NCBI RefSeq assembly: GCF_964204645.1
Contig: NC_134034.1
Coordinates: 11,110,962 to 11,174,961 of the forward strand
Direction: 5' to 3'
DNA length: 64,000 nt
DNA from: Tubulanus polymorphus
Lineage: Eukaryota > Animalia > Nemertea
The notes under the pieces are model-generated. The model was given only the letters and a program-made list of their open reading frames with translations, searched no databases and was not told the origin of the DNA. The position numbers and the translations under genes were made by a program. Shown here one piece after another: positions 17,505 through 58,054 of the stretch (positions are counted from its first letter, which is position 1; each line of letters begins with the position of its first letter).

Positions 17505-17883
17505 CATTTGTGTTCTGTTTAAGACTGAATTGATGATGGGTGTCTCGATACCAGGGCCCCGTTTCAATCAGAATCGATGCTAAAATGGATGTGTTCGATC
17601 TGTATTTATAAATCAGTCACGCGACAGAATCGCCACATTTGACAGCGTCATAAGAACACGGACGACGCGACTGCTGTATTTGTAAAATCGGAATCGATTC
17701 ATATTTCGACGCCGAGCGTCGAGACGAGTAACGAGAAGATCGTGAAACTCTGGATGAGATACGAATAGTCAATGTGTGTGTTTATGGGTTTTGTTTCTCC
17801 TGATCGATCTTTCATTGTTGTAAAAATTAGAATAAACGTGTTTTCCTGAAGTTATGAGTCATTGATTTTTGTATCTTTAATCA

Positions 17884-20800: not shown

Positions 20801-23800
20801 ACTCTGAATCACAACAATCGATGGGTTTGAAACCGGGATACCCCTGTACATACTCTATTCAGCATCAGGACCACTCTGAATCAGTATCAGTAATTACTGA
20901 GTTTGAACCCGTGACACCCCCGTACATCCTCTATTCAGCATCAGGTCCACTCTGAATCACAGTAATTGATGGGTTTGAACCCGGGATACCCCTGTACATC
21001 CTCTATTCAGCATCAGGACCACTCTGAATCAGTATCAGCAATTGATGGGTTTGAAACCGGGATACCCCTGTACATCCCCTTTTCAGCATCAGGACCACTC
21101 TGAATCAGTATCAGTAATTACTGGGTTCGAACTCAGGACACCCCCGTACATCCTCTATCCAGCATCAGTACCGCTCTGAATCAGTTATCAGTAATTACTT
21201 TTGTTAAGATATCAATATTTTACCGTACGGTGCTGCCTCTATGCTCATCGTTAGCGGAATTTTTATACACTAACGTTAGTCAACTTTGGCAAGCTAAGGT
21301 CACGGAGTATAACTGGACAGCGCGTCGATTGCCAGAGTTGACTTTAGTTAGTGTATGAAAATCCCGCTAACGATGAGCATAGTGGCAGCACTGCACGGTC
21401 GGGACACCCCTACATCCTTTATTCAGCATTAGGACAACTCTGAATCACAGTAATTGATGGGTTGAACCCGGGACACCCTTGTACATCCTCTATTCAGCAT
21501 CAGGACCACTCTGAATAACAGCAATTGATGGGTTTGAACCCGGGATACCCCTGTACATCCTCTATTCAGCATCAGGACCACTCTGAATAACAGCAATTGA
21601 TGGGTTTGAACCCGGGATACCACTGTACATCCTCTATTCAGCATCAGGACCACTCTGAATCAGTATCAGTAATTACTGAGTTCGAACTCGGGACACCCCC
21701 GTACATCCTCTATCCAGCATCAGTACCGCTCTGAATCAGTTATCAGTAATTACTTTTGTTAAGATATCAATATTTTACCGTACAGTGCTGCCTCTATGCT
21801 CATCGTTAGCGGAATTTTTATACACTAACGTTAGTCGACTCTGGCAAGCTAAGGTCACGGAGTATAACTGGACAGCGCGTCGATTGCCAGAGTTGACTTT
21901 AGTTAGTGTATGAAAATCCCGCTAACGATGAGCATAGCGGCAGCACTGTACGGTCGGACACACCTACATCCTTTATTCAGCATTAGGACAACTCTGAATC
22001 ACAGCAATTGATGGGTTTGAACCCGGGATACCCCTGTACATCCTCTATTCAGCATCAGGACCACTCTGAATCAGTATCAGTAATTACTGGGTTTGAACTC
22101 GGGACACCCCCGTACATCCTCTATTCAGCATCAGGTCCACTCTGAATCACAGTAATTGATGGGTTTGAACCCGGGATACTCCTGTACATCCTCTATTCAG
22201 CATCAGGACCACTCTGAATCAGTGTCAGCAATTGATGGGTTTGAACCCGGGATACCCCTGTACATCCTCTATTCAGCATCAGGACCACTCTGAATCAGTA
22301 TCAGTAATTACTGGGTTTGAACCCGAGACACCCCCGTACATGCTCTATTCAGCATTTGTACCGCTCTGAATCACAGCAATTGATGGGTTTGAACCCGGGA
22401 TACCCCTGTACATCCTCTATTCAGCATCAGGACCACTCTTAATCAGTATCAGTAATTACTGGGTCGAACTCGGGACACCCCCGTACATCCTCTATTCAGC
22501 ATCAGTACCGCTCTGAATCAGTTATTAGTTATCACCTTTGTTAGATATCAACATTTTACCGTACGGTGCTGCCTCTATGCTCATCGTTAGCGGGATTTTT
22601 ATACACTAACGTTAGTCAACTCTGGCAAGCTAAGGTCACGGAGTGTAACTAGACAGCGCGTTGATTGCCAAAGTTGACTTTAGTTAGTGTATGAAAATCC
22701 CGCTAACGATGAGCATAGCGGCAGCACTGTACGGTCGGGACACCCCTGTACATCCTTTATTCAGCATCAGGACAACTCTGAATCACAACAATCGATGGGT
22801 TTGAAACCGGGATACCCCTGTACATACTCTATTCAGCATCAGGACCACTCTGAATCAGTATCAGTAATTACTGGGTCGAACTCGGGACACCCCCGTACAT
22901 CCTCTATTCAGCATCAGGACCACTCTGAATCAGTATCAGTAATTACTGGGTTTGAACCCGAGACACCCCCGTACATCCGCTATTCAGCATCAGTACCGCT
23001 CTGAATCAGTTATCAGTAATTACGATATCAATATTTTACCGTACGGTGCTGCCTCTATGCTCATCGTTAGCGGAATTTTTATACACTAACTAAAGTCAAC
23101 TCTGGCAAGCTAAGGTCACGGAGTATAACTGGACAGCGCGTCGATTGCCAGAGTTGACTTCAGTTAGTGTATGAAAGTATGAAAATCCCGCTAACGATGA
23201 GCATAGCGGCATCACTGTACGGTCGGGACGCCCCTACATCCTTTATTCAGCATTAGGACAACTCTGAATCACAGTAATTGATGGGTTTGAACCCGGGACA
23301 CCCCTGTACATCCTCTATTCAGCATCAGGACCACTCTGAAGAACAGCAATTGATGGGTTTGAACCCGGGATACCCCTGTACATCCTCTATTCAGCATCAG
23401 GACCGCTCTGAATCAGTATCAGTAATTACTGGGTTCGAACTCGGGACACCCCCGTACATCCTCTATTCAGCATCAGTACCGCTCTGAATCAGTTATCAGT
23501 AATTACTTTTGTTAAGATATCAATATTTTACCGTACGGTGCTGCCTCTATGCTCATCGTTAGCGGAATTTTTATACACTAACTAAAGTCAACTCTGGCAA
23601 GCTAAGGTCACGGAGTATAACTGGACAGCGCGTCGATTGCCAGAGTTGACTTTAGTTAGTGTATGAAAATCCCGCTAACGATGAGCATAGCGGCAGCACT
23701 GTACGGTCGGACACCCTACATCCTTTATTCAGCATTAGGACAACTCTGAATCACAGCAATTGATGGGTTTGAACCCGGGATACCCCTGTACATCCTCTAT

Positions 23801-25582
23801 TCAGCATCAGGACCACTCTGAATCAGTATCAGTAATTACTGGGTTTGAACCCGAGACACCCCCGTACATCCGCTATTCAGCATCAGTACCGCTCTGAATC
23901 AGTTATCAGTAATTACGATATCAATATTTTACCGTACGTTGCTGCCTCTATGCTCATCGTTAGCGGAAATTTTACACACTAACGTTAGTCAACTCTGGCA
24001 AGCTAAGGTCACGGAGTATAACTGGACAGCGCGTCGATTGCCAGAGTTGACTTCAGTTAGTGTATGAAAGTATGAAAATCCCGCTAACGATGAGCATAGC
24101 GGCATCACTGTACGGTCGGGACACCCCTACATCCTTTATTCAGCATCAGGACAACTCTGAATCACAGTAATTGATGGGTTTGAACCCGGGATACCCCTTT
24201 ACATCCTCTATTCAGCATCAGGACCACACTGAATCAATATCAGTAATTACTGGGTTTGAACCCGAGACACCCCCGTACATCCTCTATTCAGCATAAGGAC
24301 CACTCTGAATCACAGCAATTGATGGGTCTGAACCCGGGATACCCCTGTACATCCTCTATTCAGCATAAGGACCACTCTGAATCACAGCAATTGATGGGTT
24401 TGAACTCGGGACACTCCTGTACATCCTTTATCCATCAGGACCACTCTGAATCACAGCAATTTATGGGTTTGAACCCGGGATACCCCTGTACATCCTCTAT
24501 TCAGCATCAGGACCACTCTGAATCACAGCAATCGATGGGTTTGAACCCGGGACACCCCTGTATATCCTTTATCCATCAGGACCACTCTGAATCACAGCAA
24601 TCGATGGGTTTGAACCCGGGACACCCCTGTATATCCTTTATCCATCAGGACCACTCTGAATCACAGCAATCGATGGGTTTGAACCCGGGACACCCCTGTA
24701 TATCCTTTATCCATCAGGACCACTCTGAATCACAGCAATCGATGGGTTCGAACCCGGGATACCCCTGTACATCCTCTATTCATCACCAGGACCACTCTGA
24801 ATCAGTATCAGTAATTACTGGGTTTGAACCCGGGACACCCCCGTACATCCTCTACTCAGCATCAGTACCGCTCTGAATCAGTTATCAGTAATTACTTTCG
24901 TTAAGATATCAACATTTTACCGTACGGTGCTGCCTATATGCTCATCGTTAGCGGAATTTTTATACACTAACGTTAGTCAACTCTGGCAAGCTAAGGTCAC
25001 GGAGTATAACTGGACAGCGCGTCGATTGCCAGAGTTGACTTTAGTTAGTGTATGAAAATCCCGCTAACGATGAGCATAGCGGCAGCACTGTACGGTCGGT
25101 ACACCCCTGTTCATCCTTTATCCATCAGGACCACTCTGAATCACAGTAATAACTGGTTTTGAACCCGAGACACCTCCGTACATCCTCTATTCAGCATCAG
25201 GACCACTCTGAATCAGTATCAGTAATTACTGGGTCGAACTCGGGACACCCCCGTACATCCTCTATTCAGCATCAGAACCGCTCTGAATCAGTTATCAGTA
25301 ATTACTTTTGTTAAGATATCAACCTTTTACCGTACGGTGCTGCCTCAATGCTCATCGTTAGCGGGATTTTTATACACTAACGTTAGTCATCTCTGGCAAG
25401 CTAAGGTCACGGATTATAACTGGACAGCGCGTCGATTGCCAGAGTTGACTTAAGTTAGTGTATGAAAATCCCGCTAACGACGAGCATAGCGGCAGCACTG
25501 TACGGTCGGGACACCCCTGTACATCCTTTATTCAGCATCAGGACCACTCTGAACCAGTATCAGTAATTACTGGGTTCGAACC
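17884..25582. repeat. Composite tandem array: 72/76-bp satellite interspersed with 13 copies of a 178-bp foldback
   Basis: Monomer GGGTTTGAACCCGGGATACCCCTGTACATCCTCTATTCAGCATCAGGACCACTCTGAATCA(CAGCAATTGAT/GTATCAGTAATTACT). Foldbacks start at about 18132, 18762, 19324, 19879, 20584, 21222, 21777, 22558, 23038, 23530, 23931, 24919 and 25329. Confidence 0.95.
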
Positions 25583-28500
25583 TTAGAGACGATCAGGAGG
25601 TCATCGGCTACATTTACCGAAAGCATGAAGAAAATAAAAACAATGATTTTTACAAGAGAAACACAAATCTCACGTAATTAATCATGTAATGTTAACACCA
25701 AAAGAAGGAAACTGGGTACCACTTTTAAAGGCAAAGTTAACTATTCAGGACTCTGCTTCTGTATATAAAATTCAAACCGATCATCAGTGGAAATATCAAA
25801 TTAGCGGGTGGTGAAATATATATGCCGTCACAAAATATTGCCGAAGGGCACTTAGATTTTAGACCGTACAAACAATGTATTGGGCAATACGGTCTGGATC
25901 CGCCCCTGATGGCTATAGTGGCAATCAAATTTCGTAATTACTCTTCGGCAGCTCAACACTCGCTTCTAACCAGTCAACAAGCGTTAGTGTGTCCGGGTTG
26001 AAGTGGTAAGCTGTATTGCCAATATTCGATTATCATGTTTTCCGGACATCCTCGTCTCCGCACAATGTTGGTGGAAATATTGGGTTGAAAAAAGAGGTGG
26101 ATTGCAAAATAACAAAAAACCACTGACTGGTGAACTAACAAAGTTCAGAGAGAGTAGCTAAACAGATAAAGAATTTCAATCATATTTATTCTCATACAGT
26201 GTACAACAATTATACAAAATGCCAGGTCTGTGCTCGAGGAATTATAACGTAAGCTCCTCAAACACGCTGACTGTATTTCAAAAACAGTCCAACCATGGAC
26301 GTATAAACTATTAACTATAGTTTATACATCCATGGTCCAACCATAGACTCTTAAACAGAAACGTCTATGGCCCACAACCATGGACTCTCGAGTCCACGGC
26401 TCCCCGCACTAAAACCAGAGATAAATACTCTGGAAAGCGTAAGATTTAATGAATCGATCTGATTTACATTTTTACTCTTTAAAATTTGACCCGGCCGGCC
26501 ACCTATCTACCAAGGTATTACTTTAAAATCATGATCAAGCTAACCATAGCATACCGGGCAGCTGGAAATGAACTGATCACAAATTTCATTGATTTATGAA
26601 ATGACCCGGTTGATCAGGAAAAACAAGGTATCATTTTTAGCCTTGACTCAGATTATTCATTAATAAAATTACAAGCTTTTAATATCACATAACAAAATTA
26701 CACAAAGAATTGTAAACTTTGATCCATAAAACACCGACAATTTGGGACTAGTCTGAATGTCTAAGACTATTAATTTGACATTTCATGATGTCACCGGGCA
26801 TGAGTGACACTTGATTATTTCATGAAATATGAAGCATTCTATCATATCAACTATACAGCAAATGACAATGTAAGAAAGATTTCTGTTTATACAAAAAACA
26901 TATCTCCAGCATATAAACATTAAAGCTGGACATAAGATCACAAATTCACTCAAATAATCAATCTCTCATTTCATTTCATTAACATTATTTTTACAAGAAA
27001 ACTGAAATTTTGCAAACTTTGCTTTGTATTCGAGGAATTATCAGTTCTTCGTTAACCAATGGGTGAACTGTATTTGAAACAAAAAAACAGTTCAACATAA
27101 AAGGATTACAATCAGAGATAAAACCTAAAGATTAACTCTGGAAAGCTTGAGATTAGCTAATCAATCTTTATTTTCATTTTCATTTGAATTATTTTCCAAG
27201 ATAACTAGAGTTTTACAAGATAACTAGAGTTTTTCTAACTTTGCCTGAGATTTTCAAACATTGTCAGTTCGCTCATTTAATACGTTATTTCAGGGAAAAC
27301 ATGACAAAAATTTTACTATCGATAACTAATCACGTTTATAGCTGTTTAACATTATTTCTAAAAAAGAGTAAAATGTATCTCCCAGATATTATCCCTAAAA
27401 CAATTAACAGTTACAGCAGTGACAGGGTGTGATATATAGGTAAAAGGACGCATGATCTTTCATCAGTTATTTGAAGCATTCTATCGAAACAGATATTTTT
27501 TAGTGTGTTTGATTTAGTTAAGGTTTATGGTTATTTGTTTTGTTTATTACTGAGCCGATAGAACGCTTAAAACAACAACAGAAAGGATCTCAAGAGGTTG
27601 GGAAACACGGAGAAGGTTGTTCTATGAAAGAAGAACCTTTAATAATTGGATTAAGTTGATTAGAAAAAATGCCTGATGATGAAGGCCCTATATAGAGTAT
27701 TTACTAATTATTTGTTGGTTTTGTTTATTTTTATTACTTATCATTTAATTAGTTTTTTTTGTTATGTATTTTTTTATTAATTGTTTTTTTAATGTATTTT
27801 TCTTAATCATGTTCTATGTATTTTGTACTGTTTATTACAATCTACATCATCAGGAATTTTTTATCGGTGAAATTATGGGCTCACTTAAAAAAGTGCTACA
27901 AATTCACTGCTGCACCTAAATAATAGTTTATTATAAAACACCCCGATTAGTATGAAAGCCACTCAACCTTTTGATATGGATGACAATGAAAGAAGTTAAA
28001 ACAGCTATAAACAAAATTAAAACGATCAAAATCAAGTTCAGGACTAATAACGTTCCAACATCCTTTATTGCATTTAAAAGTTGCAACTGTTTAACTGACT
28101 ACGCTCTCCCTTTTGAACATTTAGGCTATGCAAATCATTTTCACTCAATAAAATATAAAATGAATCACTATTTCTAATATCAATTATCGAATAAAGACTA
28201 AGAGAGTAATTCATTCTATGAACTATTTGATTATTACAAATTAAGCAAAGCTATGTTTAACTAAAGTATGAAGCTTATCTGAACTATCCTGTCGATATTA
28301 TATCTCAATTTCAACTGACCTACAAGTCAAACTGAGACGCTGAACGCGATCAATACCATGAATTAATGGAGCTTAATTTTATGAGACTCCAAGAAGGAAC
28401 TTTAAGGACTTAAATGACTCATCTGTTTCACATATCTAAACAGTTTGCCTAATCAATATAAAGAATCAGGAGGATGCCATTTTATTGAAATATTCAAATA

Positions 28501-28938: not shown

Positions 28939-29577
28939 CACCAAATGTAGAAGAAATCCATCCGATGCTGGGTGAATTTCTCATCTGGACTTCAGCAGTT
29001 AAATTCAAGTTGGATTCATTCTGCTGACTGTTTTAATCAGTAGATTATAGATGGTTAGTTGATCTTAGTATGGGCTTTTTCTCATAGATGTGATTCAGCT
29101 GAAAAGAGTTAAAGAAAATATCCTGTATTCACACAATATTTCATATAACATTAATCATAATAATTTCCATGTGAATCAACTTACCTGTCAAGATTGCTGA
29201 GTATCGGCTAGGATTGTCTTAGTTGGTTCGAGTTAAATTCGTTGGACTCTTCCGTGGTAGTTGATGAGTTCAATTCAAGTTGTACCTTCTATGATTGCTG
29301 TGTTCATTATCGGCGAAGTTCTCCTAAGTTGGTTAGTTCTTGAGTTTCATTCGAATCGGCCCCTTCTGTGCGCTGTTCTCTAATCGGCAGATTTCTGATG
29401 ATTCGTCGACCTCAAGCTCTTGTTTGAGTTGGTGTCCCTTACAAACCTACCACACCTGCCGCGAGCGAAACAGGCGTTTTTTTCTAAATCGGAAATCGAA
29501 GTACAGATATAGTTGTGTGATCGGCGGTCGAGTTTACAGAATATTTTTTCTTTAAATCCAAGCACATAATTGGAAAT

Positions 29578-32705
<3,128 letters not shown>

Positions 32706-32709
32706 ATAA

Positions 32710-33090
32710 GAATCCAGAATTCAGCAAAGTCTTTTTAAAGATTCAATAAATCCTTCGCACAAGAGCCAGAGTTATAGTTCCTGTATTCTTTTGATATCAA
32801 CCGATATTAAATTATACAATTGTCTTATCAACCCCTATGGTTTGGATTCGAGCACTTTTGAGATGAAGATACTGAATTAATCTTCATCGTAGATACCTAA
32901 TCAGTCTACTTAAGTCCTCTATGATTAAAATTTTCTCCGACAATATTTTATGCGGGGCTTGACATGTCTACACGAGAAGAATTTCAGATCCGGTACAAAT
33001 TTGGATTGATCACTATTTCAAACTGCTAATTTTGCATCAGAGCTTTCGATATCTAGTTTGACGAACCCAGACATCCCCAAAACCTAACTG
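32710..33090 (-). mobile_element. Possible decayed non-LTR retrotransposon ORF2 C-terminal remnant
   Basis: Broken minus-strand frames give GFGDVWVRQ, IEDLSRL, RLIQY, LIRQLYN and DFAEFW, reminiscent of the post-RT region of some LINEs; many stops and frameshifts. Confidence 0.3.
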
Positions 33091-35610
33091 ATTCAACAGA
33101 TCCCACACACATGTGGCCTAGTTAGACGCAGATGACATTGCACGATACAGTCGTCTCATCCACTGCGCTATTTTTTGAATAATTTTCACTTATATTCATT
33201 ATATTGAATTGATTTTAATTAATCTTCTAGATATCTAACGCAATCCGTTAATTAGTAATCATACTAGCTTCATTTTAATGTCAGTTAAATTCGTCACTAC
33301 TTGAATTCATTAGAACTTAAGATACAAGCACATTTTTAGTGGTAAATTAGAAATTCCCTTATAGCCGAATTGCTATTTAATCTTTATTTCCCTTTTACAG
33401 TACACTGTGTATAAGACCGAAAGACCTTGTTATGACTGGACCTCCCTGGTGCGGTGCGAGTCATGATGCTGGAATATAGATTGAAGGAGAGGGGTTAGTA
33501 AAAGAGAGCTATTAGCAAGAGGGATAAGACCTAAGTTTAGGATATCCTGTCAGAATAAGGCTCTCAATCTGATATACACAGTGAAATTGAAAATATTCCC
33601 CCTTCCAAATTCAGGAATGTATTTGTGCACAGATTTGTTTTATCTCCCTTCGATCGGAAGTAAATCTTCGTTAAATGATTTTGGCAATATGTATCAAAAC
33701 TAATACAGCTGAATGAAGACACAATAGGTTCACTTAAGATACAGATAAATAAATGTGCTCAGATACACATGTATCAGCTTTAAATGTCCATGGACCTAAA
33801 TTAAAAATATTTTCATATAACAATTGAATTTAACCCTAATTGTAGATATCTAAGTAATACGTTAATGAGTAATTCAAGCTATATTCTAATTGTCAGTTAA
33901 ACTATATCTATTATGCGTCACTTGACACACAGTTATGCTTTTAGATATTATTTGAATCAGTTAGGTTTCGGTAAATTTTGGCAATATTGAAGAGCATGAC
34001 CAGTCGCCGTAATTAGGAGTTTGAGATGCAAGTACTGATCAGTCGATGAGACTGATTCAGATGTGCTCATACATATCAGCTATATTTAAATTGTAAGTTT
34101 AACAACATTTATATTATGGACCTGTATTACATATAGTTTTTGATCTAACATGAAATATTGATTGTGGAATCTTAATTGTGGATATCTAAGCCATTTGTTA
34201 ATGAGCAATTTGTCCTAGTTATATGTATGATAATTGTCAGTTAATCAATAATCATAGCGCAAAACAAGGCACATGGTATGGCTCTGGGGAATGATTTGAA
34301 TCGATTTAAGCTTTGTTTGATTCTAGATTTGTCAAAGTGCTGAGACGTAATCATAGCTTCTAAAAGATCCACAGTCCATAGTTTTCCCCCATGTATATTA
34401 CACCAGACCTCGATAGAGCCCTAGACACTTTTTATACATCTTTCCGCGGAGAAATTCATTAATGCAATGGGTAAAGCAGCATATAATATATACTGTAAAG
34501 TGCCTGAATGTTTATAAATGTATCAATATACTATTTGTAAAAAAATCTATTAACCGACGATGAAGTTTAATTGATATATATCTTTACAAGTAAAGCCAGC
34601 CTAAATGTATACAGGGCCCTAAAATATCTACACCAGAAGAATTTCTCGTCAAACATTATAAGATATTGAATGATTGCTAATATCTAAGCGATTAATTAGT
34701 AAATTGTCCTATCTCTGTATCTTGATTGTCAGTTAAACAATAGTCATATGAGGCCTGAAATATAGCGCCAAGCAAAAAGATGATGGCGTCTCGCCAGATG
34801 GCGCTATGTTACGGTGCCGCTCCAAAAGTCAATTCGGGCGTTATCTGCCTAGCCAAAAGCAATATGGCTATAGTGTATTTTCCCAGGGAATGTATTCGAA
34901 GTAAATATCTACGGTACATTCGAAAAATTACAAATGTCACATTGGATATTGAATTTACCTTAATTGTACATACTTAAAAAAATCTGAATTAATAATTGAC
35001 CAATCTACATTTTAATTATCAGCCAAAGTAGGCCTACATTTATAAGGGACCTCACTCATTGATTTTGTCTAATAGTGTAAATATTTAAGCAATCATTGCC
35101 CTAGTTACATTTCATTTTACTATCAACAATGTACCGGCCACAGAGCCTCAATAAAGTAGTGCGGAGATGCCGAGCTTGACCAGCGTCTCTATCCTCTCCA
35201 GTGCCTATGCATTTTGCTCCAGGTATGAAAAATCAACTAAGCTTTATGTCCTGGTATGTATCCATTCCTGTTGCTTATGCAGAATGAGCTCAAGACTGCC
35301 AGGTTCGGTTGCCAGGTGGAGTCTTTTGTGGTCACTTCTGGTGGGTAGATTTTAGGTTGATATCACGCTGGGCCTTTCCAGATTAAGTTTAGCTGAAATG
35401 AGCAAAAGAATGATATCCTGTAGTTACACAATCCTCTCTGTATCATACATCGTAATTTACATGTGTATCAACTTAACTTTCAATATTGCTGAGTTCAGTG
35501 TTCTTTTTTTTCGGCATCGTCTTCGTTGTCGTCACCTTCAGCATCTTCTTCTTCTTCATCTTGGGAATCCTGAAATTAAAAAAAAGAGAAGAGCGATGAA
35601 AACCTGGTAC

Positions 35611-36415
35611 GGAACAAAACTAATGTCAGAAAGCTTTACAGCTCTCCGTCTTCGGTCACATGCCGAGAACACCAGACAAAGAGCCAGCCAGGAATATACT
35701 GCCCTCTACACGCCCTCACACAGAACACGAAAACCAGGATGACAACGCCTTACTTTCACCATTTACCGACAGGGTGTGCCGGATGACGTCAGTAACTGAC
35801 AAACCTATCAAATTGCCCAAGCCAAAAATCAGGCAGCGCAACTGGATTGCCCGCACTAGCACTCAAAGGAAGACAAGACTTAATCCATGCCCGAAGCAAC
35901 CCACAGGGAATCAATGAATACTAACACGCAAAGGAAGACAGGGAAATTAATCCCTGCCCGAAGCAATCCCTTAAAAGGAATCAATGAATGCTAGCACGCA
36001 AGCGATCCCGCAGTGAATCAATGAATCCTAGCACGCAAAGGAAGACAGGGAAATTAATCCCTGCCCGAAGCAATCCCTTAAAAGGAATCAATGAATGCTA
36101 GAACGCAAAGGAAGACAAGACTAAATCTTTGTCCGAAGCAATTCCTGAAAAGGAATCAATGAATACTAGTAGACAGTCCAGCTTTACCACTCCATTTTTA
36201 ACCAGTCCAGTGCAATCGGACCGACTTGCCCGTCATTGACGTCACCCAGCACACTCTGTAGATAGGTGGGGAGAGTGAGGCCTCGTCATCCTGGTTTCCG
36301 TGTTCCGTATGAGGGCGTGTAGTGGGCAGCCATTTCCTGACCGACTCTTTGTCTGACATCCTCGACACGTGACCGGCGATGGAGAGCCGACGCTTTCGGA
36401 CATTAGTTTTGTTCC
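35611..36415 (-). ncRNA. Candidate long structured hairpin RNA (~255-bp imperfect stem, multibranched repeat loop)
   Basis: Arms 35611-35864 and 36161-36415 are reverse complementary. Substitutions between the arms mostly give G-U pairs on the minus strand. The loop holds ~4.5 ~70-bp self-folding units. No expression evidence. Confidence 0.55.
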
Positions 36416-37120
36416 AGCAAACGTTGAAATCGGCCCTGAAAAATAAAACGGATTAATAAACACGGAACAATACAGGACAGCACAGATACGAACAGTAACA
36501 CATAAAACATAAAGACGTCGTTCCTCAGGAAGCAGGAACAAGAGCAGGAGCGGGAGCGCAGCGAAAATCGCCAGGAGGAGAATCCACGGTGGCATGTTCA
36601 CAGTGTAAGTAAGCTGAGGTGAATGGCCTATGCTTGTGTACACCGTGGTTAGCCGGTGACGTATTCAATAGCGCGTGTAAATGATATCGACAAACTTTGA
36701 AAAACCGCAATTGTGTCTCTTTTGTTGAATGGATTTACATTATGAAAGGTTCCACCGCCGGGTTGAATACGCGCCAGTAGTCAGATGTGAGTAGACTGGT
36801 TACCTGAGATAGAGACCGGTAACCAGTCTAGTCACTTCGCGGCCCCGGCTGCATAAAATTCCGCGGTCTTTAGAACTTAGTGATGTTACTTATTTTCTTT
36901 ATTGCGTAAATAAACTTATCTATATATTTCTAAAGTGAAAGGTTTGTGTTGATTTAATCATGCAGTTCAGCAGTTTTCGGATAGATGGCAGCATTGTATG
37001 TAACGGGAATCAATATTATTGAATTGAGTTGTCAAGTTTGTTCCTGGTTACAAAAAACTCTCATTTGCCGCCGTTAAAGAATTTGACAGCTCTGAAGCAG
37101 AATACAGTGATAAAAATGCT

Positions 37121-40100
37121 ATGTCTTTCTTGAAGTCAGTTGCACCAGTTTTACTGAAACTTCGTCATAAATCGTTGAATAAGGTATTTTAAATATCAAT
37201 CCAATTCAATTAATAATGATTTATTGTTAACCCTAATTGAAATATGTTGAAATTTGGTGTTTCGAGGGTACATGAATAACTGGGTCTAACATAAAGTCTG
37301 ACATCTGTAATTACTAGGTGTGTTTGAATCAAGCTGCAGCGAGTGGATGGATTTTTCAAACCAGGAGACTCCGACGACTGTTTAGTCGGACTTCGAATAT
37401 GGAGAAATCGGCCGGACTACAACATTTACAACAAGCTCAACAGCGCATTAAACAGGTAGAATAAAACATGACTCAGTTCGTCTAATCTGAATGCCAGATA
37501 ATTTACTGGTTTGGTTCCTTATTTGTGTGGGGTTTGGTTCCTTAGTTAGAATCGGATGGGCTTATGTACCCGCTATGAAAATATCTGATCGTGAAGCTAA
37601 ACCACGGACAGTTTATTGACTAGGACTAGCCCTGATTCAGCCCACAGTTAGGGCTTGTCACAAAAGTACCTATAGGATACTGCATTGAATCTCTGATATT
37701 GGATTCCCAGCTATTGCGACAAGGCAATGATTCAAGCCATTGTAACAAGATAATCGTAAAACTGGTTCCCTATTGATAGAGATCTCTCAAAGTCTAATAT
37801 ATGTATGTATTGTATCGTGATAGTGGAGTATCCACGGTGGATTCAATGCGTCTAATACGGATAGTTTGCCGGTGAAGTGCGTCGGTGTGGTTGGAGGCGG
37901 TGGAACGATGGGTAGTGGAATCGTGATGGTTTTACTCAACGCCGGATTACGTGTCGTACTAGTAGAATCAAATACAGAGGTATCAGTTAAAACCTAAATC
38001 TGCTTTAATTTGAACCCAACGCTAAACCTCGCTTAATTTTGAAACCCCCTCATCACATTTTGATGTTGAAGCCCCCTCTAAACCTTATCTAAAGCCTCCT
38101 TGCTTAACCTAGATCCTGCTTAAATCTACCCCCTCTACAGTCTAGACCCTTCACTAAACCTTGCTTAATTTTGAAACCCCCTCATCACATCTTGATGTTG
38201 AAGCCCCCTCTAAACCTTATCTAAAGCCTCCTTGCTTAACCTAGATCCTGCTTAAATCTACCCCCTCTACAGTCTAGCCCCTTCACTAAACCTTGCTTAA
38301 TTTTGAAACCCCCTCATCACATTTTGACGTTGAAGCTCCCTCTAAACCTTATCTAAAGCCTCCTTGCTTAACCTAGATCCTGCTTAAATCTACCCCCTCT
38401 ACAGTCTAGCCCCTTCACTAAACCTTGCTTAATTTTGAAACCCCCTCATCACATTTTGATGTTGAAGCTCCCTCTAAACCTTATCTAAAGCCTCCTTGCT
38501 TAACCTAAATCCTGCTTAAATCTACCCCCTCTACAGTCTAGCCCCTTCACTAAACCTTGCTTAATTGAATCGGCTTCAATTTGAACCCCCTCACGTGCGC
38601 GATGTCGATAGATATATTTTCTAGTCCAGAGACCGAGCCGTTCAGACTATGCGGAATCTCTACTCCAACGCGGTGAAGTTGAAGAAATTGTCACCGGAAC
38701 AAACTGAAAAACATCTCTCGCGTATGATTCCAACTACTGAATATTCGCAATTAAAACGCTGTGATGTCGTAAGTACGAGTTCGAAATCTTCCGTTAAATC
38801 ACCCTATGACACGATCAAAAATAGAATTAGTCCATAGGTCCTTGTGGAAATGTTGGTTGCCTCCATAAAATCCCCCTATGACATCACTAATCGTTTTGGT
38901 CAGAACTGTTTACTGGATTTAGAGATGATGGGTGTCTAGATAAAATAACCCCTATGACATCACTAATTAGCAGTTGCTGATTATATTTGCAGGTGATCGA
39001 AGCTGTATTTGAGAATCTGGAGCTGAAGAAACAAATATTCAACGAATTGGATAAAATCTGTCCACCTCATACGATATTAACATCAAACACGTCATCTTTA
39101 GACATCGATCAGGTAGGGCTCACCCCCTCCCCCTAGCCCCTCTCCCGATTGCAATTTTAAACCTCTAATAGTCTTACTCGATGATTTTCAGCTGGCAGCT
39201 GCCACTAATCGCGCAGATAAAGTGATGGGCACACATTTCTTCATTCCCGTTTACCAATCGAAACTACTCGAGAACAGCTACGGCCGGTCTACGTCGCCGC
39301 AAACTGTCGCTACAGTGATGAAACTCGGGCAGAAGATCGGCAAGGTAAATGAGAATCGATATTTTACCCCTCAGAAAGTTGGCTGCTCGCTTGAAATTAA
39401 TTTGAACAGAAATATGAGAGTTGTTACTGAGGGTCTTACCCCCCTTGATTACTGCTTGTATATATTTATACCGGTATGTTTATTGTAGTTTCCGGTGTTA
39501 ATGAAGAATTGTGAATTATTCGTAGCTAACCGCGCGCTCATACAGTACATGTGGGAAGCTACGTTACTGCTGGAGGAAGGCGCCGATCCGAGTTCCGTCG
39601 ATACAGCCGTCGAGGAGTTCGGAATTCCGATGGGACCGTTCAGACTAAACGATATCATCGGTAATTAACGAGAGAACTGATGCTACCGTTCAGGGGCTGT
39701 AGTTGCTCAAAAGTTGCGTAAAGATAACCGGCCGATAAATACCATAAAAGATTTACTTCTAATTGTCACTATGTTAACTATCCACTGATAAACTCTAACC
39801 AAATGTTCAGCAACTGGCCCCGGATAATTAATGTCATAAGGGGTTTATGTAGTCAGCCATGTTTTTCTGCTTGCTCGAAAATTTCATCTCTGATTGCCAT
39901 TAACATCAGAGCCTTCGGATAACCGGCGGATAAATACTGTAGTTACGATGAACTTTTAATTGTCACTATGTTAACTATCCACCAGTTAACTCTAACCAAC
40001 TTTTCAGCAACTGGTCAACCCTGGACCCAGTTACACAGTTGTGACTTAAATCCAAGAGTGGTCTTAGAAATTAAGACTAGTCTAAAGTTGGCCTTAGACT

Positions 40101-42236
40101 GGTCTCGTATCTAAGCCAAGACTCGTTCCTGGTTTTCTGCAGATGAAACGGATGATCACCTAATGCATTCGTTAATTCGTTTTCTCAAGGTCACGATACG
40201 TTCGATCGAATCACCACCGAATCGATTCTGAAATATGGATTCAGTGAAAATGGCCGATTCGTCAATAATACGCCGTATTCCGCGATTCATAAAGAAACGT
40301 TCAACTCGGGTCGACTCGGAGTAAAAGTCGGTGAGTTAGTCGTAAACAGGGCGGCTCCGCTCTTCTGGAAATCGGGGAAAAGTCGGCAAATTTTCTTTTC
40401 TTAGAAAAGTTAGGGAATACAGTAGTCGGGGAATTTTGTAGGAAAGTTTAAAATCAGGTAAAAGTCAGGGAAGTTTGTATTTTCGGTTTTCATGTTAAGG
40501 TAAAGGTTGGTACGAATACGAGAAGGGTTCCCGGGATGGATTCATCGACGAAGACGTTTTAGAGATTTTGGACCGGTTTCGCGCCGAACACAACGTTCAA
40601 CCTAGAATTCATTCTAAACAGGTTGGTAAGAAACTCGACGATTCAATTACTGGCAAGGTTACTGCGGCGAGCGAGCATCCACCAGGTGGTGCTAGTGTTA
40701 ATGAGGACGGGGCCGCTGGAATCAAAATGTATCCAATTGTTTTTCAGGGTTTAAAATTCTAGATGAAAGTCCGAGGTTTTAGTCGCGCCATCTAACAAGG
40801 GCGGAATTAGTCGTTGGACCAGGTGGACTGGTCCACCTAACATCTAAATTTCAATGGACCCTCCTAAATGTCTTGAAAAACTTTATTCGCACAGAAAGCT
40901 TTAAAACGATGAAAAATAAATCCAAATGGCTGGAGATAAGTGCCCCTTTTTGTCCTTTTCTGTGGAAGGCCACCAGAACCCCCATTATTGTTTCGCCCTT
41001 GTTGCACTTGAATTGCCAAATCTGCCCTTCTCAAATTAAGTACACTTTCAAATTTTCAAATCCATCCGCATGTAAGAATCCTTGATCCACTCTTGATCTA
41101 AGTGGGATGTGGCTGATGTGCCTGATCGCACCTATACTGCGTAGCAGTGTCAGTTACAGACGTTCAATCGGTCTTGATTTCAATCTATTTTCAGGAGATT
41201 ATAGAACGTTGCACGCTGTCGATGGTTCACGAATGTTTCCGTATTTTACAGGATGGAATCATCAGTTGTCCGGACGATATTGATTTCATATGGTAACGTC
41301 TGCTACTCATAACGACAGACGTTCAGGTGGCTGTCGTTGCTGAATAGTTGGTTCAATTTAACCGGTGGATAGTTGACATAGCGACAATAAAAACTTCATC
41401 GTTATTATGATTTTTTATCCGCTGGTTATCTTTAACTAACTTTTCAGCGACTGGGTCCAGTTACACAATTCCGAGTTAAGATTTAACTCTCGAGTTAGCT
41501 CATTGAAATTGAAAATGAACTTACTTTAACTCTAACTCACAACTGTGGGACTGGATCCTGGGCTTTTACAAAAAGAGTTGACTTCTCAACCTTCTTCAAT
41601 ATCAGAAGTGCAGACTTCATTGTGGGTTCTGTGGTTCTTTTGCTAGATGAAACACTCCTCTTACCTTGTGTCGGATTTGTGTTCAATTTCCAGAGTTGCA
41701 GTCCTCGGACCATTTCTGAAAACGGTTCGATGTCCCCTGGCTTAGCTTGAAAACCACTTAAGATTCAATACCTTATTGAAACTGTCCCTGAAACTATTCT
41801 TTTGAATTCCTGAGAAATAGTTATATCCTAAAAACATGTCTCATTGACCCCGATTTGGATATTTGCAGGTTGTTGCCGGTTAATGTGGAGGAAGCTCATT
41901 TCGAATATCTTTGTTTTTTGCAGCGTGACGGCGTTAGGATGGCCTAAAACCACCGGGGGTCCGCTGTTCTACGCGAGTCGCACCGGTCTTAACAATCTAC
42001 TCGCTAAAATGAAACATTATCGAACTTCATTGAGTAAGTCAGTAAATTATGTAGGGAAATTGGGTATTTAGAAATTCATGTTGGCCATTGATCAAGTTTA
42101 AAAAATGTCTTCATTTTCTATATTTGTAGCCGACGCCCTCCAGTGGACACCCTGTGAACTACTAGTTGAACTGGCAGCTCAGGATGTTCCGTATGCCGAA
42201 TGGATGTCGTTTTTGGAGAAAAGCTCAAAACTTTAG
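37121..42236 (+). CDS. EHHADH: EHHADH-derived L-3-hydroxyacyl-CoA dehydrogenase lacking the enoyl-CoA hydratase domain; N-terminal presequence and C-terminal SKL (507 aa)
   Basis: Exons 37121-37183, 37318-37455, 37824-37979, 38625-38768, 38993-39112, 39192-39344, 39489-39660, 40190-40330, 40500-40621, 41195-41292, 41924-42033, 42130-42236 (1524 nt, in frame). Motifs: VGVVGGGGTMGSG (NAD), VIEAVFENLELKK, SNTSSL, GTHFF..LLE, FVANR, PMGPF, GRLGVKVGKGWYEY, GWPKTTGGP and terminal SSKL*. The first two exons are less certain than the rest. Confidence 0.88.
38020..38570. repeat. 132-bp tandem repeat (4 copies) in intron 3
   Basis: GAAACCCCCTCATCACA recurs at 38041, 38173, 38305 and 38437. Confidence 0.92.
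41454..41557. mobile_element. Palindromic MITE with CTG flanks
   Basis: CTG|GGTCCAGTTACACAATT...AACTGTGGGACTGGATC|CTG. Relatives at ~12296-12420, ~42890-42985, ~43465-43562 and ~55287-55390. Confidence 0.6.
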
Positions 42237-46269: not shown

Positions 46270-49200
46270 TCACGACGGCGTTAGAGAATGATGATGGTGA
46301 TGATGAGATGACGATGAATAATGATTCGGCGAAGATGACGACGACGAGGTATCGTGTAATTGCCTGGAAATATAAAACGAAAAAGATTTTTATTTTAAAT
46401 TTCGCCCATCTCCAGATCATTGGTTTTTCGAGGAAAAATTTGACAAAAAATTTTCACTCAGAAAATTTAGATTTCTCTTATTTAGCCGAGTTAAATACCT
46501 AATTAATGATTTGGATTGTTTTACTTTGTCGTAGGGGAGGAAGGTGCCGAGGTCATCTTCAATTGGGGACTGAAAAAAAAGCGACAACAGTGCAAACAAC
46601 AGTTACAATAGCAACAACGAGCAGACGACGTAAGCAGACGACGTAAGCAGACGGTTGCGAGCTGCGACAAGCAGGAAACGCACGCAACAAAAATTAATCG
46701 AAAAATAACAACCAGGCAATTTCTCCTAAATTCCAGTGGCTGTACAGGGTGGCCACTTTTATCTGACTTGCTTCCCCCCCCGACTATTCCCAGACATGTA
46801 CATTGTTTTCCCTGACTTGATTTGCTAAGAATCCAATTAACGTACTCAATACGCAAGACGTAAACGAAAACTGTTTGATTTTTACACACGATCTCGCAAT
46901 CTCGACAAATTTCCCCGACTTTTAGCTTTGTTACAAAATTCCCAAGACTTTCCTTGATTTCCAGGTAAGAGGCCAACCTGTTGTAGTATATAGTATCATG
47001 GCAACGAATTAACAACAGTAGCATTATCGACGGCGCGTCTGCTAATGGAGCGAGACGGATACTTACTTGGATTTTAAAACCGACGGTTTCAAATAATCGT
47101 CTTGCGACAGAGCGAGCACGTCGGGTCGCGCGTCCTTTGACTTTTGAAGACACCTTCGGATAAAATTCTACGAGGACGAAAAAAACAACAAAACGAACAT
47201 TTTTGATATTTCGATGGTTTTTTTGGTTTATTCTGCCGATTGACGCTTGACGAGTGTCTTACCTTGGCCTCCTGCGTGACTACCGGTTTAGCCGGGAACT
47301 CGGGAGCGGCTGGCCCATTCACAATTAAATTCTGTTCTAATATCTCAGCTTGTGATTTGTCATGGCCAAAAGGCTGGAAAAGGAATTCAACAGATAAATT
47401 GTAAATCGATTCAAGGATGATTCTAAGGGAAGTGTTTGTTTGAAAGAATGATTTCAGCAGAAGTGTCTACATTTCATGGGAGTAGTTTTCTCAAAAAACT
47501 GATTTGGCTAGTTTTAGAAATATCGATGACACAAATATACAGACCTTTCTGCCGTAGAGACATTGATAAAATATCACTCCCACCGACCACACGTCGACTT
47601 TTGAAGAAATCTTAGGTGGCGATTTTCCAATATGAAAGCACTCGGGCGGAAGGTACCTGTCAACAGAACACGATATACATGTTTCATCATCAGTTCTAAC
47701 TTAAGCAATGGTTTATTTACTATCAGTTATGACGAACAGATTTTCCGGCGCCCCAAAGTTTAATTGTGTAATGACGAGGTTTTGCAGTATTTGAGTAACA
47801 AATTGCCCACTGTTCACCCCTCACCTATGATCGCCGCCCCCCCCCCCCAAGACCTCGTTGTAACTATACATACCAGTATGTTCCAGCACCTTGAGACGTT
47901 AAATCCATACCACTATCAGGATTATATTTATCTTCTTCCATGATTTTACTGAGACCGAAGTCGGTGATTTTGATTTCACCGCTCGCGTTCCCAGAACCGA
48001 GAAGAATGTTACCTACAACGTACAACGTATGCAATACTGTAGCAAGGGCGGGGCCATGATTTCTGTAAGGCAGGGTATCAGGGTACTGAAGGGCACAAAA
48101 GTAATCGCGAAGGGCAGCCTGACGTGGCAAGCGCTGAAGCCATCAATGGGGGTCTGGTTCTTCCCCCAGAAAATTGTGAAATCTTGAATTTCTAATGGCT
48201 GTCATTCATATTTCTTTGTAAAATGAAGAAAAAAAAAACCAATTTTTTCCTAAAAATTTTGAGGGCACCTCTAGATCCCCCCTTGTATAGATAGATCCAC
48301 AGGGCTGTAGACTAGAGGGGACCCACTGGATACAGTCGACTAGAAAACGCTTACGACTAACTGGGTACGAGAATCCGGAACTCGTAACTGTGACAAAGAA
48401 CCAACGAATGAACCATCGGGACCGAAAAGGACAAGAGATTACAAACATAGCTTACCGGGTTTAAGATCGTAATGTATGACGGGAGGCTTGATTTCGTTGA
48501 GATATTTCAACGCGTTAATCGTTTGAACCATGATTGAACGAGCCTCTCGTTCGGGAATAATCTTATTCTGTTTCAGATAGAAATCCAGGTCGTTCCCGTT
48601 ACAATACTCTAACACTGTACAAAAACTGAAAATTATAATTATAATCATTTCAATAATAATCATGATGATAATGATAGATTATATTTTGAGATAGTGCTTC
48701 GAATTATAAAATTTACTACCCTACTCCCTCTCTACCACTCTCCCTACTCCCTCTCTACCACTCTCCCTACTCCCTCTCTACCACTCTTCCTCTCCCTCTC
48801 TACCCCTCTTCCTCTCCCTCTCTACCCCTCTTCCTCTCCCTACTCCCTCTCTACCACTCTCCCTACTCCCTCTCTACCACTCTCCCTACTCCCTCTCTAC
48901 CACTCTCCCTACTCCCTCTCTACCCCTCTTCCTCTCCCTACTCCCTCTCTACCACTCTCCCTACTCCCTCTCTCCCTACTCCCTCTCTACCCCTCTTCCT
49001 CTCCCTCTCTACCCCTCTTCCTCTCCCTACTCCTCTCTACCACTCTCCCTACTCCCTCTCTACCACTCTCCCTACTCCCTCTCTACCACTCTCCCTACTC
49101 CCTCTCTACCCCTCTTCCTCTCCCTCTCTACCCCTCTTCCTCTCCCTACTCCCTCTCTACCACTCTCCCTACTCCCTCTCTCCCTACTCCCTCTCTACCC

Positions 49201-52171
49201 CTCTTCCTCTCCCTCTCTACCCCTCTTCCTCTCCCTACTCCCTCTCTACCCCTCTCCCTACTCCCTCTCTCCCTACTCCCTCTCTCCCTCTCTCCCTCTC
49301 TACCACTCTCCCTACTCCCTCTCTACCCCTCTCCCTACTCCCTCTCTCCCTACTCCCTCTCTACCACTCTTCCTCTCCCTACTCCCTCTCTACCCCTCTC
49401 CCTACTCCCTTTCTACCACTCTTCCTCTCCCTACTCCCTCTCTACCCCTCTTCCTCTCCCTACTCCCTCTCTACCCCTCTTCCTCTCCCTACTCCCTCTC
49501 TACCACTCTCCCTACTCCCTCTCTCCCTACTCCCTCTCTACCCCTCTTCCTCTCCCTACTCCCTCTCTACCCCTCTTCCTCTTTCTACTCCCTCTCTACC
49601 CCTCTCCCTACTCCCTCTCTCCCTACTCCCTCTCTCCCTACTCCCTCTCTACCCCTCTTCCTCTCCCTACTCCCTCTCTACCCCTCTTCCTCTCCCTACT
49701 CCCTCTCTACCACTCTTCCTCTCCCTACTCCCTCTCTACCCCTCTTCCTCTCCCTATTCCCTCTCTACCCCTCTTCCTCTCCCTACTCCCTCTCTACCCC
49801 TCTTCCTCTTTCTACTCCCTCTCTACCCCTCTTCCTCTCCCTACTCCCTCTCTACCCCTCTTCCTCTCCCTACTCCCTTTCTACCACTCTTCCTCTCCCT
49901 ACTCCCTCTCTACCCCTCTTCCTCTCCCTATTCCCTCTCTACCCCTCTTCCTCTCCCTACTCCCTCTCTACCCCTCTTCCTCTCCCTACTCCCTCTCTAC
50001 CCCTCTTCCTCTCCCTACTCCCTCTCTCCCTACTCCCTCTCTACCCCTCTTCCTCTCCCTACTCCCTCTCTACCCCTCTTCCTCTTTCTACTCCCTCTCT
50101 ACCCCTCTCCCTACTCCCTCTCTCCCTACTCCCTCTCTACCCCTCTTCCTCTTTCTACTCCCTCTCTACCCCTCTCCCTACTCCCTCTCTCCCTACTCCC
50201 TCTCTACCCCTCTTCCTCTCCCTACTCCCTTTCTACCCCTCTTCCTCTTTCTACTCCCTCTCTACCCCTCTCCCTACTCCCTCTCTCCCTACTCCCTCTC
50301 TACCCCTCTTCCTCTTTCTACTCCCTCTCTACCCCTCTCCCTACTCCCTCTCTCCCTACTCCCTCTCTACCCCTCTTCCTCTCCCTACTCCCTTTCTACC
50401 CCTCTTCCTCTTTCTACTCCCTCTCTACCCCTCTCCCTACTCCCTCTCTCCCTACTCCCTCTCTACCCCTCTTCCTCTCCCTACTCCCTTTCTACCACTC
50501 TTCCTCTCCCTACTCCCTCTCTACCCCTCTTCCTCTCCCTACTCCCTCTCTACCCCTCTTCCTCCCCCTACTCCCTCTCTACCCCTCTCCCTACTCCCTC
50601 TCTCCCTACTCCCTCTCTACCCCTCTTCCTCTCCCTACTCCCTCTCTACCACTCTTCCTCTCCCTACTCCCTCTCTACCCCTCTTCCTCTCTCTACTCCC
50701 TCTCTACCCCTCTTCCTCTCCCTACTCCCTCTCTACCCCTCTTCCTCTCTCTACTGTTGTACTAGCCACTAAATGATGTTATGTAGTAGTTTTGATAATA
50801 CAACACACATTTCGAGATTTTGACACAAATGATCGAATCAGTTTTCGAACGAACCACTAGGGGGCTTACCAATTATTATCTATTTCGAATACGTCGCGTA
50901 GTTTAACTATTCTAGCGTGGTCTAGTTGTTTGTGTATGTTACATTCCCGTACGGCGTGTCTGCAAAACAAACAGAACAAATCGGTTAATAGTATGATTGA
51001 CAGGCGCGTACGCGCGGTGGGCGGGGCTATACGTACTTTATATAGTTCGCCTTCTTTTCGTCGTTCCACGAATTGTTTAATTGGTGAATTTTACATGCCA
51101 CGTAACTTTGGTCTTTCAGATCAAATGCCTACAAACGATAAATCAGTACGCCGATGATAATACGCGATATGCGAACCAATCAATTAACAGGGTGGCGCCA
51201 CCTTAATTTGACTCGCATTCTCGCTAACTTTCCCCCGATACGCGCGTTGTTTTCCCCGACTCGATCTGATAAGAATCCGATCGAACAATTAACACAGTCA
51301 AATATGTAGACATTGACGGAAACTGTTCTGATTTTATCTAGCAATATCAACAAATTTCACTGACTTTTCCCTGATTTTGAGCTTTTCTACATTTCCCGAC
51401 TTTTATTAGACTCACTTTTCCCCCGACTATTCCCCGACATGCGCGTTGTTTTCCCTGACTTGATCTGCTAAGAATCCGATCAATTAACGCAGTCAAATAT
51501 GTAAAACATTGACGGAAACTGTTTGATTTTATGCACGATCTAGAAGCTTTCTTACAAAATTCCTCGACTTTTTTCAAGAAAAGAAAATTCCCCGACTTTC
51601 CTTGCTTTCCAATTAAGTGGCCACGCAGTAATATTTAGGATTTCAGGCGATTGCGATGAAACTCGAAAATTTCTGGACGGTTTTCGAAGCTGATTTTCTC
51701 ACCTTATGTACTTCGCTAAATCCACCTTTTCCTAATAGATTCAGTAGAAGATAACGTTCGTTTAAAATCGGATGAGATTTAAACCTGGAATTCAACAAAC
51801 AAATCCGTTAATTTCTTCGTGTTTCCGAAACGATGGTCGGTTCCGTAAAAATCCCCCTATGACATCATCGAAATAGTCGACTAATGAACGTTAGTATCGA
51901 TAAGTCTTCCAGAAAAGATGGTTGCCTTCCTCAATCCCCCTATGACATCATCAAATTATCTACGAGTGAATATTATTTAAAGACGCTTCTACTAGTAAAG
52001 ATGTCAGACTCCATAAATCCCCCTATGACATCATCAAATTATCTACTAGCGAATCTATAGATGCTTCAAAAAAGATGTCTGCCTCCTTAATTCCCCCTTT
52101 GACATTATCAATTGTCTACCAGTGAATATAATCTATAAACGCTTCTACAAGTAAAGATGTTCGAATCCATA

Positions 52172-52228
<57 letters not shown>

Positions 52229-57225: not shown

Positions 57226-58054
57226 TATCGAACCTGAAAAATACAATCGACACCGATTCAGCCTTTCATCCCCCTATGACATCACCAAACCGTGTTGAAA
57301 AGATGGCTACTTCAAATATAAATCCCCCTATGACATAATCGAATTGTTTCGCAAAGATGGCTATTTCAAAGTATAGATTCCCCTACGACATCATAAATTG
57401 TTTATAAGCATTAAGAATAGATGGCTACCTCCATAAATCCCTCTATGACATCATCAGATTATCAAAATAAGGTTTTAAGAGATGAATCTCCCTATGACAT
57501 CATTAATCTGCCAGCAGACCCTTTCAAATGATAGGGCTGGCATAGAGGTCAAAAACGAAGATCCTAAAAACCGCTTTTTCAATTTCTTACGAAGACAATA
57601 CTGGAGGCCACAGTTAGCTTTGCAATGCACATAGTTAAAAACTGACGCCCATTTGGTTATTAAACAGAAGTTTCAATTGTACTACTTAGTAATTTATGCG
57701 GATGAGTGCATGCGTTAGTGAAACAATGCTCTCTCTATCTCTCTCTAGTACCGGTCGGACCCTCGTACTCGTAACCTACGTTCTACCTATATTCAATAGT
57801 ACAACGTGTAAAAACGCTAATCAATAAGTATCATTGCCTGCCTGCGAAGACTAGAGGAAACACATATAATATATATATAATATATATATATATATAAATG
57901 TACGTCTGTGACAATGCCATACGATAATATACTATTAGTACTAAACGCACCATATACACACACACTACAGACACTACTACAGTCATCGGCTATTATCAGA
58001 TTACATGTAATCCTAATTAATGTAATCCCCGGGAAATCTATCTGTTCAAGGCGT

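Follow-up and report, generated by a model that had tools for sequence, protein, structure and literature searches.

A strand-polarised predicted RNA rod capped by repeated three-way junctions in a high-copy cassette of the nemertean Tubulanus polymorphus

The window analysed here is a stretch of 64,000 nucleotides from the genome of the palaeonemertean Tubulanus polymorphus (RefSeq assembly GCF_964204645.1, contig NC_134034.1, positions 11,110,962 to 11,174,961 of the forward strand), and positions below are counted from its first letter. Three protein-coding genes were recognised in it. A TTLL9 tubulin polyglutamylase is encoded on the minus strand at 62605-63981 by one uninterrupted ORF of 458 amino acids, which was matched in assembly GCA_964204645.2 (record OZ123235.1) and has its nearest relatives among Owenia, Lamellibrachia and Lineus proteins; it is without introns and may be a retrogene. 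A protein kinase gene, in our reading Tousled-like, occupies about 46500-57250 of the same strand, and a 2-kb repeat composed of C and T only, with a 29-nt period, lies within it (48740-50755). The third gene, encoding an EHHADH-like 3-hydroxyacyl-CoA dehydrogenase, starts near 37121 on the plus strand (37121-42200), and its exons 37122-37181, 37316-37453 and 37822 onward are found spliced in one of the sequencing runs described below (X4). Elsewhere in the window, 17880-25590 is a composite array of 7.7 kb built of 72-76-nt units, in which higher-order repeats occur and inverted segments of 71 nt are embedded. The long hairpin with which this study is concerned, at 35591-36438, stands head to head with the dehydrogenase gene and not within that gene.

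A sequence-only reading of the window had described two reverse-complementary arms of ~255 bp whose differences lean toward G-U pairs in a minus-strand RNA. Formal local alignment bore this out. The arms, 35594-35865 and 36160-36432, are identical at 196 of 268 positions (73%) with 9 gap columns, and on the minus strand they form the 3' arm (272 nt, G+U fraction 0.63) and the 5' arm (273 nt), respectively, of a predicted RNA rod. The transitions that separate them are not symmetric: 35 (19+16) lead to G-U on the minus strand and 11 (5+6) lead to A-C (binomial p=0.0005), and a transition-friendly matrix gave 37:11; transversions number 26. The same lean was counted formally in the outer part (20:8 over 35611-35802, where about 22:8 had been counted by eye for ~190 bp) and in the inner part (14:3). 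The strands are also unequal in predicted folding, a comparison that the sequence-only reading had proposed. The RNA minimum free energy of 35591-36438 was -460 kcal/mol for the minus strand and -340 kcal/mol for the plus strand, a gap of 120 kcal/mol with RNA parameters and of 24 kcal/mol with DNA parameters. The minus-strand rod has 239 predicted pairs with a mean pair probability of 0.97, among them 40 G-U or U-G pairs, and its longest unbroken helices measure 42 and 40 bp; the plus strand has 186 pairs and a longest helix of 17. Columns that do not pair are mildly clustered away from the core of the rod (p about 0.04). The predicted minus-strand fold is thus a long imperfect intramolecular duplex, larger than a pre-miRNA and present on one strand, which is the structural definition of a hairpin RNA (hpRNA).

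The rod is closed by an apical loop (35855-36170, minus strand) of ~4.5 tandem units of 68-70 nt, one of them truncated; the earlier reading had not mentioned the tandem repeats of this 294-nt loop. Each full unit is predicted to fold on the minus strand as a three-way junction consisting of a closing stem and two hairpins, and the folding energy of the loop is -119 on the minus strand against -68 on the plus strand. When the loop was folded as DNA, the junctions were absent from the centroid structure. A comparison of four units found 96% of cells paired, eight additional pair types, in most cases a G-U gained or lost, and 2 two-sided changes; a shuffle control on this covariation was not significant (105/500), four related sequences being too few. 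Because the last unit ends in sequence that pairs with the beginning of the first and so extends the rod, a loop of one unit was probably the ancestral form. A miR-7 seed match is found in every full unit (35868-36116, minus strand), partly within a stem. We rejected these matches as a signal, since finding one of ~35 conserved seeds in a 70-nt unit is near chance and the four matches are a single event copied.

Several transcript-like signals, read from sequence, accompany the rod on the minus strand. Immediately before the rod, a U-rich tract (36436-36460) that closes with CAG at 36436 forms a 3' splice-site-like signal, and a second such signal (35570-35592) ends at 35570, ~24 nt past the rod. 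The second is followed by an exon-like segment (35478-35569) that includes a 24-codon acidic frame (35569-35495), of unsupported coding status and with no homologue found, then by an intron-like module (35393-35477) with a degenerate donor and an intact acceptor (35393), and finally by a candidate last exon (35002-35392) with an ATTAAA at 35016; an X4 contig starts at 35002, and depth drops beyond. The intron-like module is 76% identical to 29094-29202, in which the donor is canonical. The surrounding region at 28950-29480 (minus strand) is a second intron and last-exon module, 76% identical to 35388-35494 and with canonical splice signals; it has another upstream exon and no hairpin, and may belong to the same modular family as a further non-coding unit. 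Upstream of the rod, 36461-36784 may be a leader or promoter part and is the deepest part of the family. It contains a 53-codon hydrophobic frame from an ATG at 36595, for which a protein search gave no homologue candidate; a longer ATG frame had a single match, repetitive and attributable to chance. No canonical donor was found between this ATG and 36436, nor any donor usable to join the exon-like segment to the upstream ATG frame; the donor may sit in a part that is missing from the window copy. A 48-amino-acid micropeptide was considered and is not supported, as it needs a GA donor and no fixed family variant falls in that interval among those listed. On the plus strand, 36540-36611, within the deepest part of the cassette, is purine-rich and ends in a perfect donor, GTAAGT (about 36606); it is a possible divergent first exon.

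Contigs from five sequencing runs of one species label, none recorded as RNA, were matched to 33000-38000. They place the hairpin in a larger multicopy unit of at least 3.8 kb, a setting that the earlier reading did not mention. By contig cover and depth this cassette takes up 33000-36784, with no strand assigned and with its left edge at 33000 or further left. In run X1 the single-copy control, the dehydrogenase introns, was one contig of 1306 nt at depth 40, identical to the window. Over 33000-36840 the same run yielded 670 contigs (165 at 99% identity or more, 240 at 95-99% and 217 at 90-95%), and the summed depth over the cassette was 10-290 times that of single-copy sequence, a figure that is not a copy number and is read for order of magnitude only. 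From contigs and depth, we take the cassette to be present in tens to hundreds of copies, again as an order of magnitude and with older copies hidden by the identity cut-off of 88%. Copies differ from one another by 0-12%, against 27% between the two arms, and the G-U bias therefore arose before amplification. Depth reaches its maximum over 36340-36673, in part beyond the arms, and its minimum in the loop, as a variable repeat would lead one to expect. At 36784 five contigs carry on into a common, different sequence, and the window copy is therefore cut or interrupted there, ~340 nt from the start of the dehydrogenase gene. A 21-bp palindrome (36784-36838) sits at the exact divergence point and is likely a small inserted element. 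At the other end, family sequence is shared for at least 2 kb beyond the candidate poly(A) site. The AT-rich flank at 32870-35100 holds degenerate 340-500-nt repeats, is also multicopy, and shares short motifs with a 58-nt satellite at 29500-32700. No tail or target-site duplication was seen at the cassette, whose true ends were not reached, and a literature search found no description of it.

Run X4 is RNA-like: its dehydrogenase contigs are spliced at GT-AG sites and reach depth 349, and the single-copy introns are empty. Run X2, from the same sample, covers the dehydrogenase introns. The X4 contigs span the whole cassette, including 36223-36387 in an arm, which suggests that the family is transcribed; they carry no information on strand, on ends or on the activity of this particular copy. 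Their cover of the flanks is about equal to that of the exons and extends to an intronic repeat, and X2 shows that holes in cover can be filter artefacts. There was no minus-strand splice joint among the joints listed, and a paralogous contig passes unspliced through the acceptor of the second intron. Run X5 (2015) had no contigs on 33000-38000.

Both arms translate, across a common frameshift and stop, into stretches that, by their motifs, seem to resemble the C-terminus of an RTE-like LINE ORF2. As a lead obtained by eye, the arms may derive from the decayed 3' end of such an ORF2, with the 5' arm in sense orientation. Searches with arm pieces against Pfam, with a profile of both arms, and against genome and viral contigs were all blank, the pieces being too short for such searches, and they identified no gene or transposon as a target in trans; against Atlas the pieces retrieved unnamed clusters only, with weak recognition. 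A 17-nt arm pattern was found at 73 metagenomic loci, with 0 extending past the seed. Rfam gave no match at gathering score and, at a lower threshold, two weak matches at chance level outside the rod. No hammerhead core, the mark of a retrozyme, was found in the cassette. A miR-29-like stretch at the foot of the rod (36416-36431, plus strand) agrees in 12 of 16 letters in register; the pattern was chosen post hoc, the mismatches fall on microRNA positions 6-9 and the stretch lies in LINE-like coding sequence, and we regard the likeness as chance.

The locus is a real strand-polarised predicted RNA rod with a repeated three-way-junction cap, in an undescribed high-copy cassette. The best explanation, to which we assign a probability of roughly 45%, is a host gene family of hairpin RNAs of the endo-siRNA-generating type. 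The element plausibly works like an hpRNA, with about the same odds, yet we have not filed it as one. Fly hpRNAs are rich in G-U pairs. The 42- and 40-bp helices each offer room for two Dicer cuts, and the loop units fold on the same strand as the rod; we counted both points for this explanation, along with the polarity of the arms, a strand gap that is much larger in RNA than in DNA folding, the broken pair at 36323 and the listed fixed differences (both given below), the X4 contigs and the presence of siAGO without DICER2 in nemerteans. There is precedent for such an origin, as hp-ODox2 of D. simulans, a hairpin built from BS2/Jockey LINE sequence, gives rise to siRNAs directed at the same LINE, and multiplication of hpRNAs into clustered or dispersed copies is frequent, with up to 13 clustered in the Drosophila cases considered (PMC10317233). 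Against the hpRNA explanation we counted the 27% divergence of the arms, which would make them a poor match to a source LINE, the absence of an endo-siRNA signature in the nemertean Notospermus, the unspliced paralogous contig together with the absence of a minus-strand joint among those listed, and a copy number of tens to hundreds, dispersed and with flanks of kilobases, which exceeds those Drosophila cases and looks like selfish amplification.

Selfish amplification is indeed the core of the strongest alternative, which we consider unlikely: a non-autonomous passenger mobilised as RNA by the reverse transcriptase of a Penelope-like element or a LINE, in which the rod and junctions would be cis signals or a protective structure for its own spread. 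The high copy number with many near-identical copies fits such a passenger, as do the LINE-like appearance of the arms by eye and an arm divergence that predates amplification, as in a master lineage. Penelope-like elements can, moreover, carry introns. Other properties of the cassette are less easily accommodated. The deepest cover lies at the 5' end, contrary to the pattern of 5'-truncated retrocopies, and copies still share sequence 2 kb or more beyond the candidate poly(A) site. The absence of a hammerhead core and of an Rfam match also speaks against a passenger, as does the lack of a visible tail or target-site duplication, though the latter is tempered by the ends not having been reached. 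A long duplex that passes repeatedly through an RNA stage might also acquire an ADAR footprint, and the neighbour signature of this enzyme is absent (5' G not depleted, 14/35 vs 28/94). On the same ground, ADAR editing followed by retrotransposition was rejected as the source of the G-U bias.

Quite improbable, in our judgement, is a structured lncRNA that is never diced and whose rod steers acceptor choice, keeps the transcript nuclear, acts as a ligand or decoy for dsRNA-binding proteins, or closes the loop into a circle. Acceptor-like signals do stand exactly at both feet of the rod, the 3' arm encloses a donor-like GTAAGG (35753), the loop starts with an acceptor-like site (36145), and each loop unit has its miR-7 seed match. 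Yet one strong donor motif per 270 nt is near chance, as is the seed match, no splice joint was seen among those listed, and 240 bp far exceeds the need of splice control.

The polarity itself could also be neutral in origin. An inverted LINE fragment in a duplicated region would acquire precisely this G-U polarity from strand-biased A>G and C>T mutation on the non-template strand, and the 26 transversions and 9 gap columns between the arms represent real decay. The sequence-only reading had assumed that a neutrally decaying inverted repeat shows no strand asymmetry. As a general premise this was too strong, since transcription-coupled mutation gives equal polarity; mutation of this kind nevertheless fits the present data poorly, and we hold the neutral explanation to be improbable, more so than the undiced lncRNA. 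A 1.5-fold strand bias was rejected (p=0.017), whereas the data are compatible with a two-fold bias limited to the arms (p=0.11; 95% interval of the ratio 1.6-6.9). The strand difference in folding energy of the arms alone, -77 kcal/mol, was reached in 0 of 120 simulated inverted repeats with matched transition and transversion numbers under symmetric mutation, and likewise in 0 of 120 under a 1.5-fold strand bias. Differences between copies across the cassette were symmetric in three runs (40:44, 40:45 and 47:54; p about 0.002 for each against the 35:11 of the arms), although these differences are unpolarised, which weakens the test. Among the fixed transitions listed, nearly all of them outside the arms, the direction was opposite (5:12), and the neighbouring genes have no skew (G+T fraction 0.50-0.51). 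At CpG sites, whose decay is strand-symmetric, the polarity was 9:2 (p=0.065), and at non-CpG sites it was 26:9 (p=0.006). Among the differences listed as fixed against other copies, 4 fall in 1284 nt of core and 25 in 2500 nt of flank (p=0.014). At 36323 the window copy has an A-A mismatch; every contig matched there in X1, X2 and X4 keeps the pair. Strand-biased mutation, ADAR editing and DNA folding fit poorly as explanations, and selection on RNA structure is, in our estimate, quite probable. The proposal of the sequence-only reading that a minus-strand RNA is selected to fold into a long rod remains the most likely one, given the 35:11 count, the fold, the simulations and the symmetric copy differences.

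A foldback or single-stranded-DNA element (MITE, Mutator-like or Helitron-like) with a hairpin acting as DNA is very improbable: the high copy number by which such a transposon was to be known is there, G-T beats A-C in DNA as well (by 24 kcal/mol) and a similar short motif at both feet is readable as a target-site duplication, but the inverted repeats are not the ends of the repeated unit, which runs kilobases past the arms and is deepest outside them, the motif at the feet is the ordinary acceptor consensus and its distance to the well-paired arms is unequal (21 and 31 nt), and no loop junctions appear in the DNA centroid fold.

Under the preferred hairpin-RNA explanation, the window element would belong to a family of non-coding RNA cassettes that is dispersed and present in many copies. 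A decayed LINE 3' fragment, duplicated in inverted orientation, would have been taken into a minus-strand polymerase II transcript, and selection on the RNA, as the sequence pattern suggests, would have kept changes from A-U or G-C to G-U and purged A-C and other mismatches. Later the cassette and its flanks were amplified as a whole, as the variety and depth of the contigs show. The 240-bp imperfect rod would be an hpRNA precursor cut by a single Dicer, with or without Drosha, to 21-23-nt RNAs; loaded into an siRNA-type Argonaute, these would silence transcripts of related LINE-derived or other repeats. The array of three-way junctions that caps the rod may bind a processing or export factor, and the two acceptors would allow the rod either to remain exonic or to leave with an intron.

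The nemerteans studied by Formaggioni et al. (2024) are reported to have siAGO and to lack DICER2, and Notospermus showed no global endo-siRNA signature; the authors suggest that DICER1 or another route may supply siAGO and leave open what the nemertean protein loads (PMC11114477). For that question the cassette family provides a concrete candidate substrate and a precise locus class. A more far-reaching proposal, which we regard as doubtful, is that the missing substrate of nemertean siRNA-type Argonautes is a family of endogenous long hairpin RNAs, expanded to tens to hundreds of genes in a Dicer-2-less lophotrochozoan, with non-canonical processing in which the repeated three-way junction acts as recognition signal. 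If the rod is diced, hairpin-RNA silencing would reach beyond flies by a one-Dicer route. If it is not, a high-copy element selected for a 240-bp rod and repeated three-way junctions would be a structured RNA, mobile or non-coding, of an undescribed kind. With so many copies, covariation analysis is feasible at once from the public assembly.

Among known systems, foldback and Mutator-like DNA transposons and MITEs have long inverted repeats around a tandem-repeat spacer in many copies. The cassette resembles them in this architecture and copy number and differs in that its repeats are internal to the amplified unit, are 27% diverged, have RNA-type polarity and are without a convincing target-site duplication. 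Retrozymes and other non-autonomous RNA-mobilised elements combine high copy number with strongly structured RNA and tandem structured units. The cassette has the same three properties, but it is without a hammerhead core or an Rfam ribozyme match, and its unit is much longer and carries splice-like signals. The endo-siRNA loci of mammalian oocytes are inverted repeats processed by the microRNA Dicer, and they are mostly single and near-perfect. They are alike in placing a long hairpin in a one-Dicer lineage, whereas the cassette is old, G-U-rich and amplified, and nemerteans retain a separate siAGO; shared Dicer and AGO have been noted for mammals (PMC11114477). The Drosophila hpRNAs, such as D. 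simulans hp-ODox2 and the multicopy hp-tHMG and hp-pncr009 (PMC10317233), share with the cassette a long imperfect inverted repeat in an apparent non-coding transcript, several copies and possibly LINE-derived arms. The hairpin described here, known from sequence and predicted fold, differs from them in belonging to a lineage reported to be without Dicer-2, in occurring as tens to hundreds of dispersed copies with common kilobase flanks, and in having as its loop a variable array of three-way junctions.
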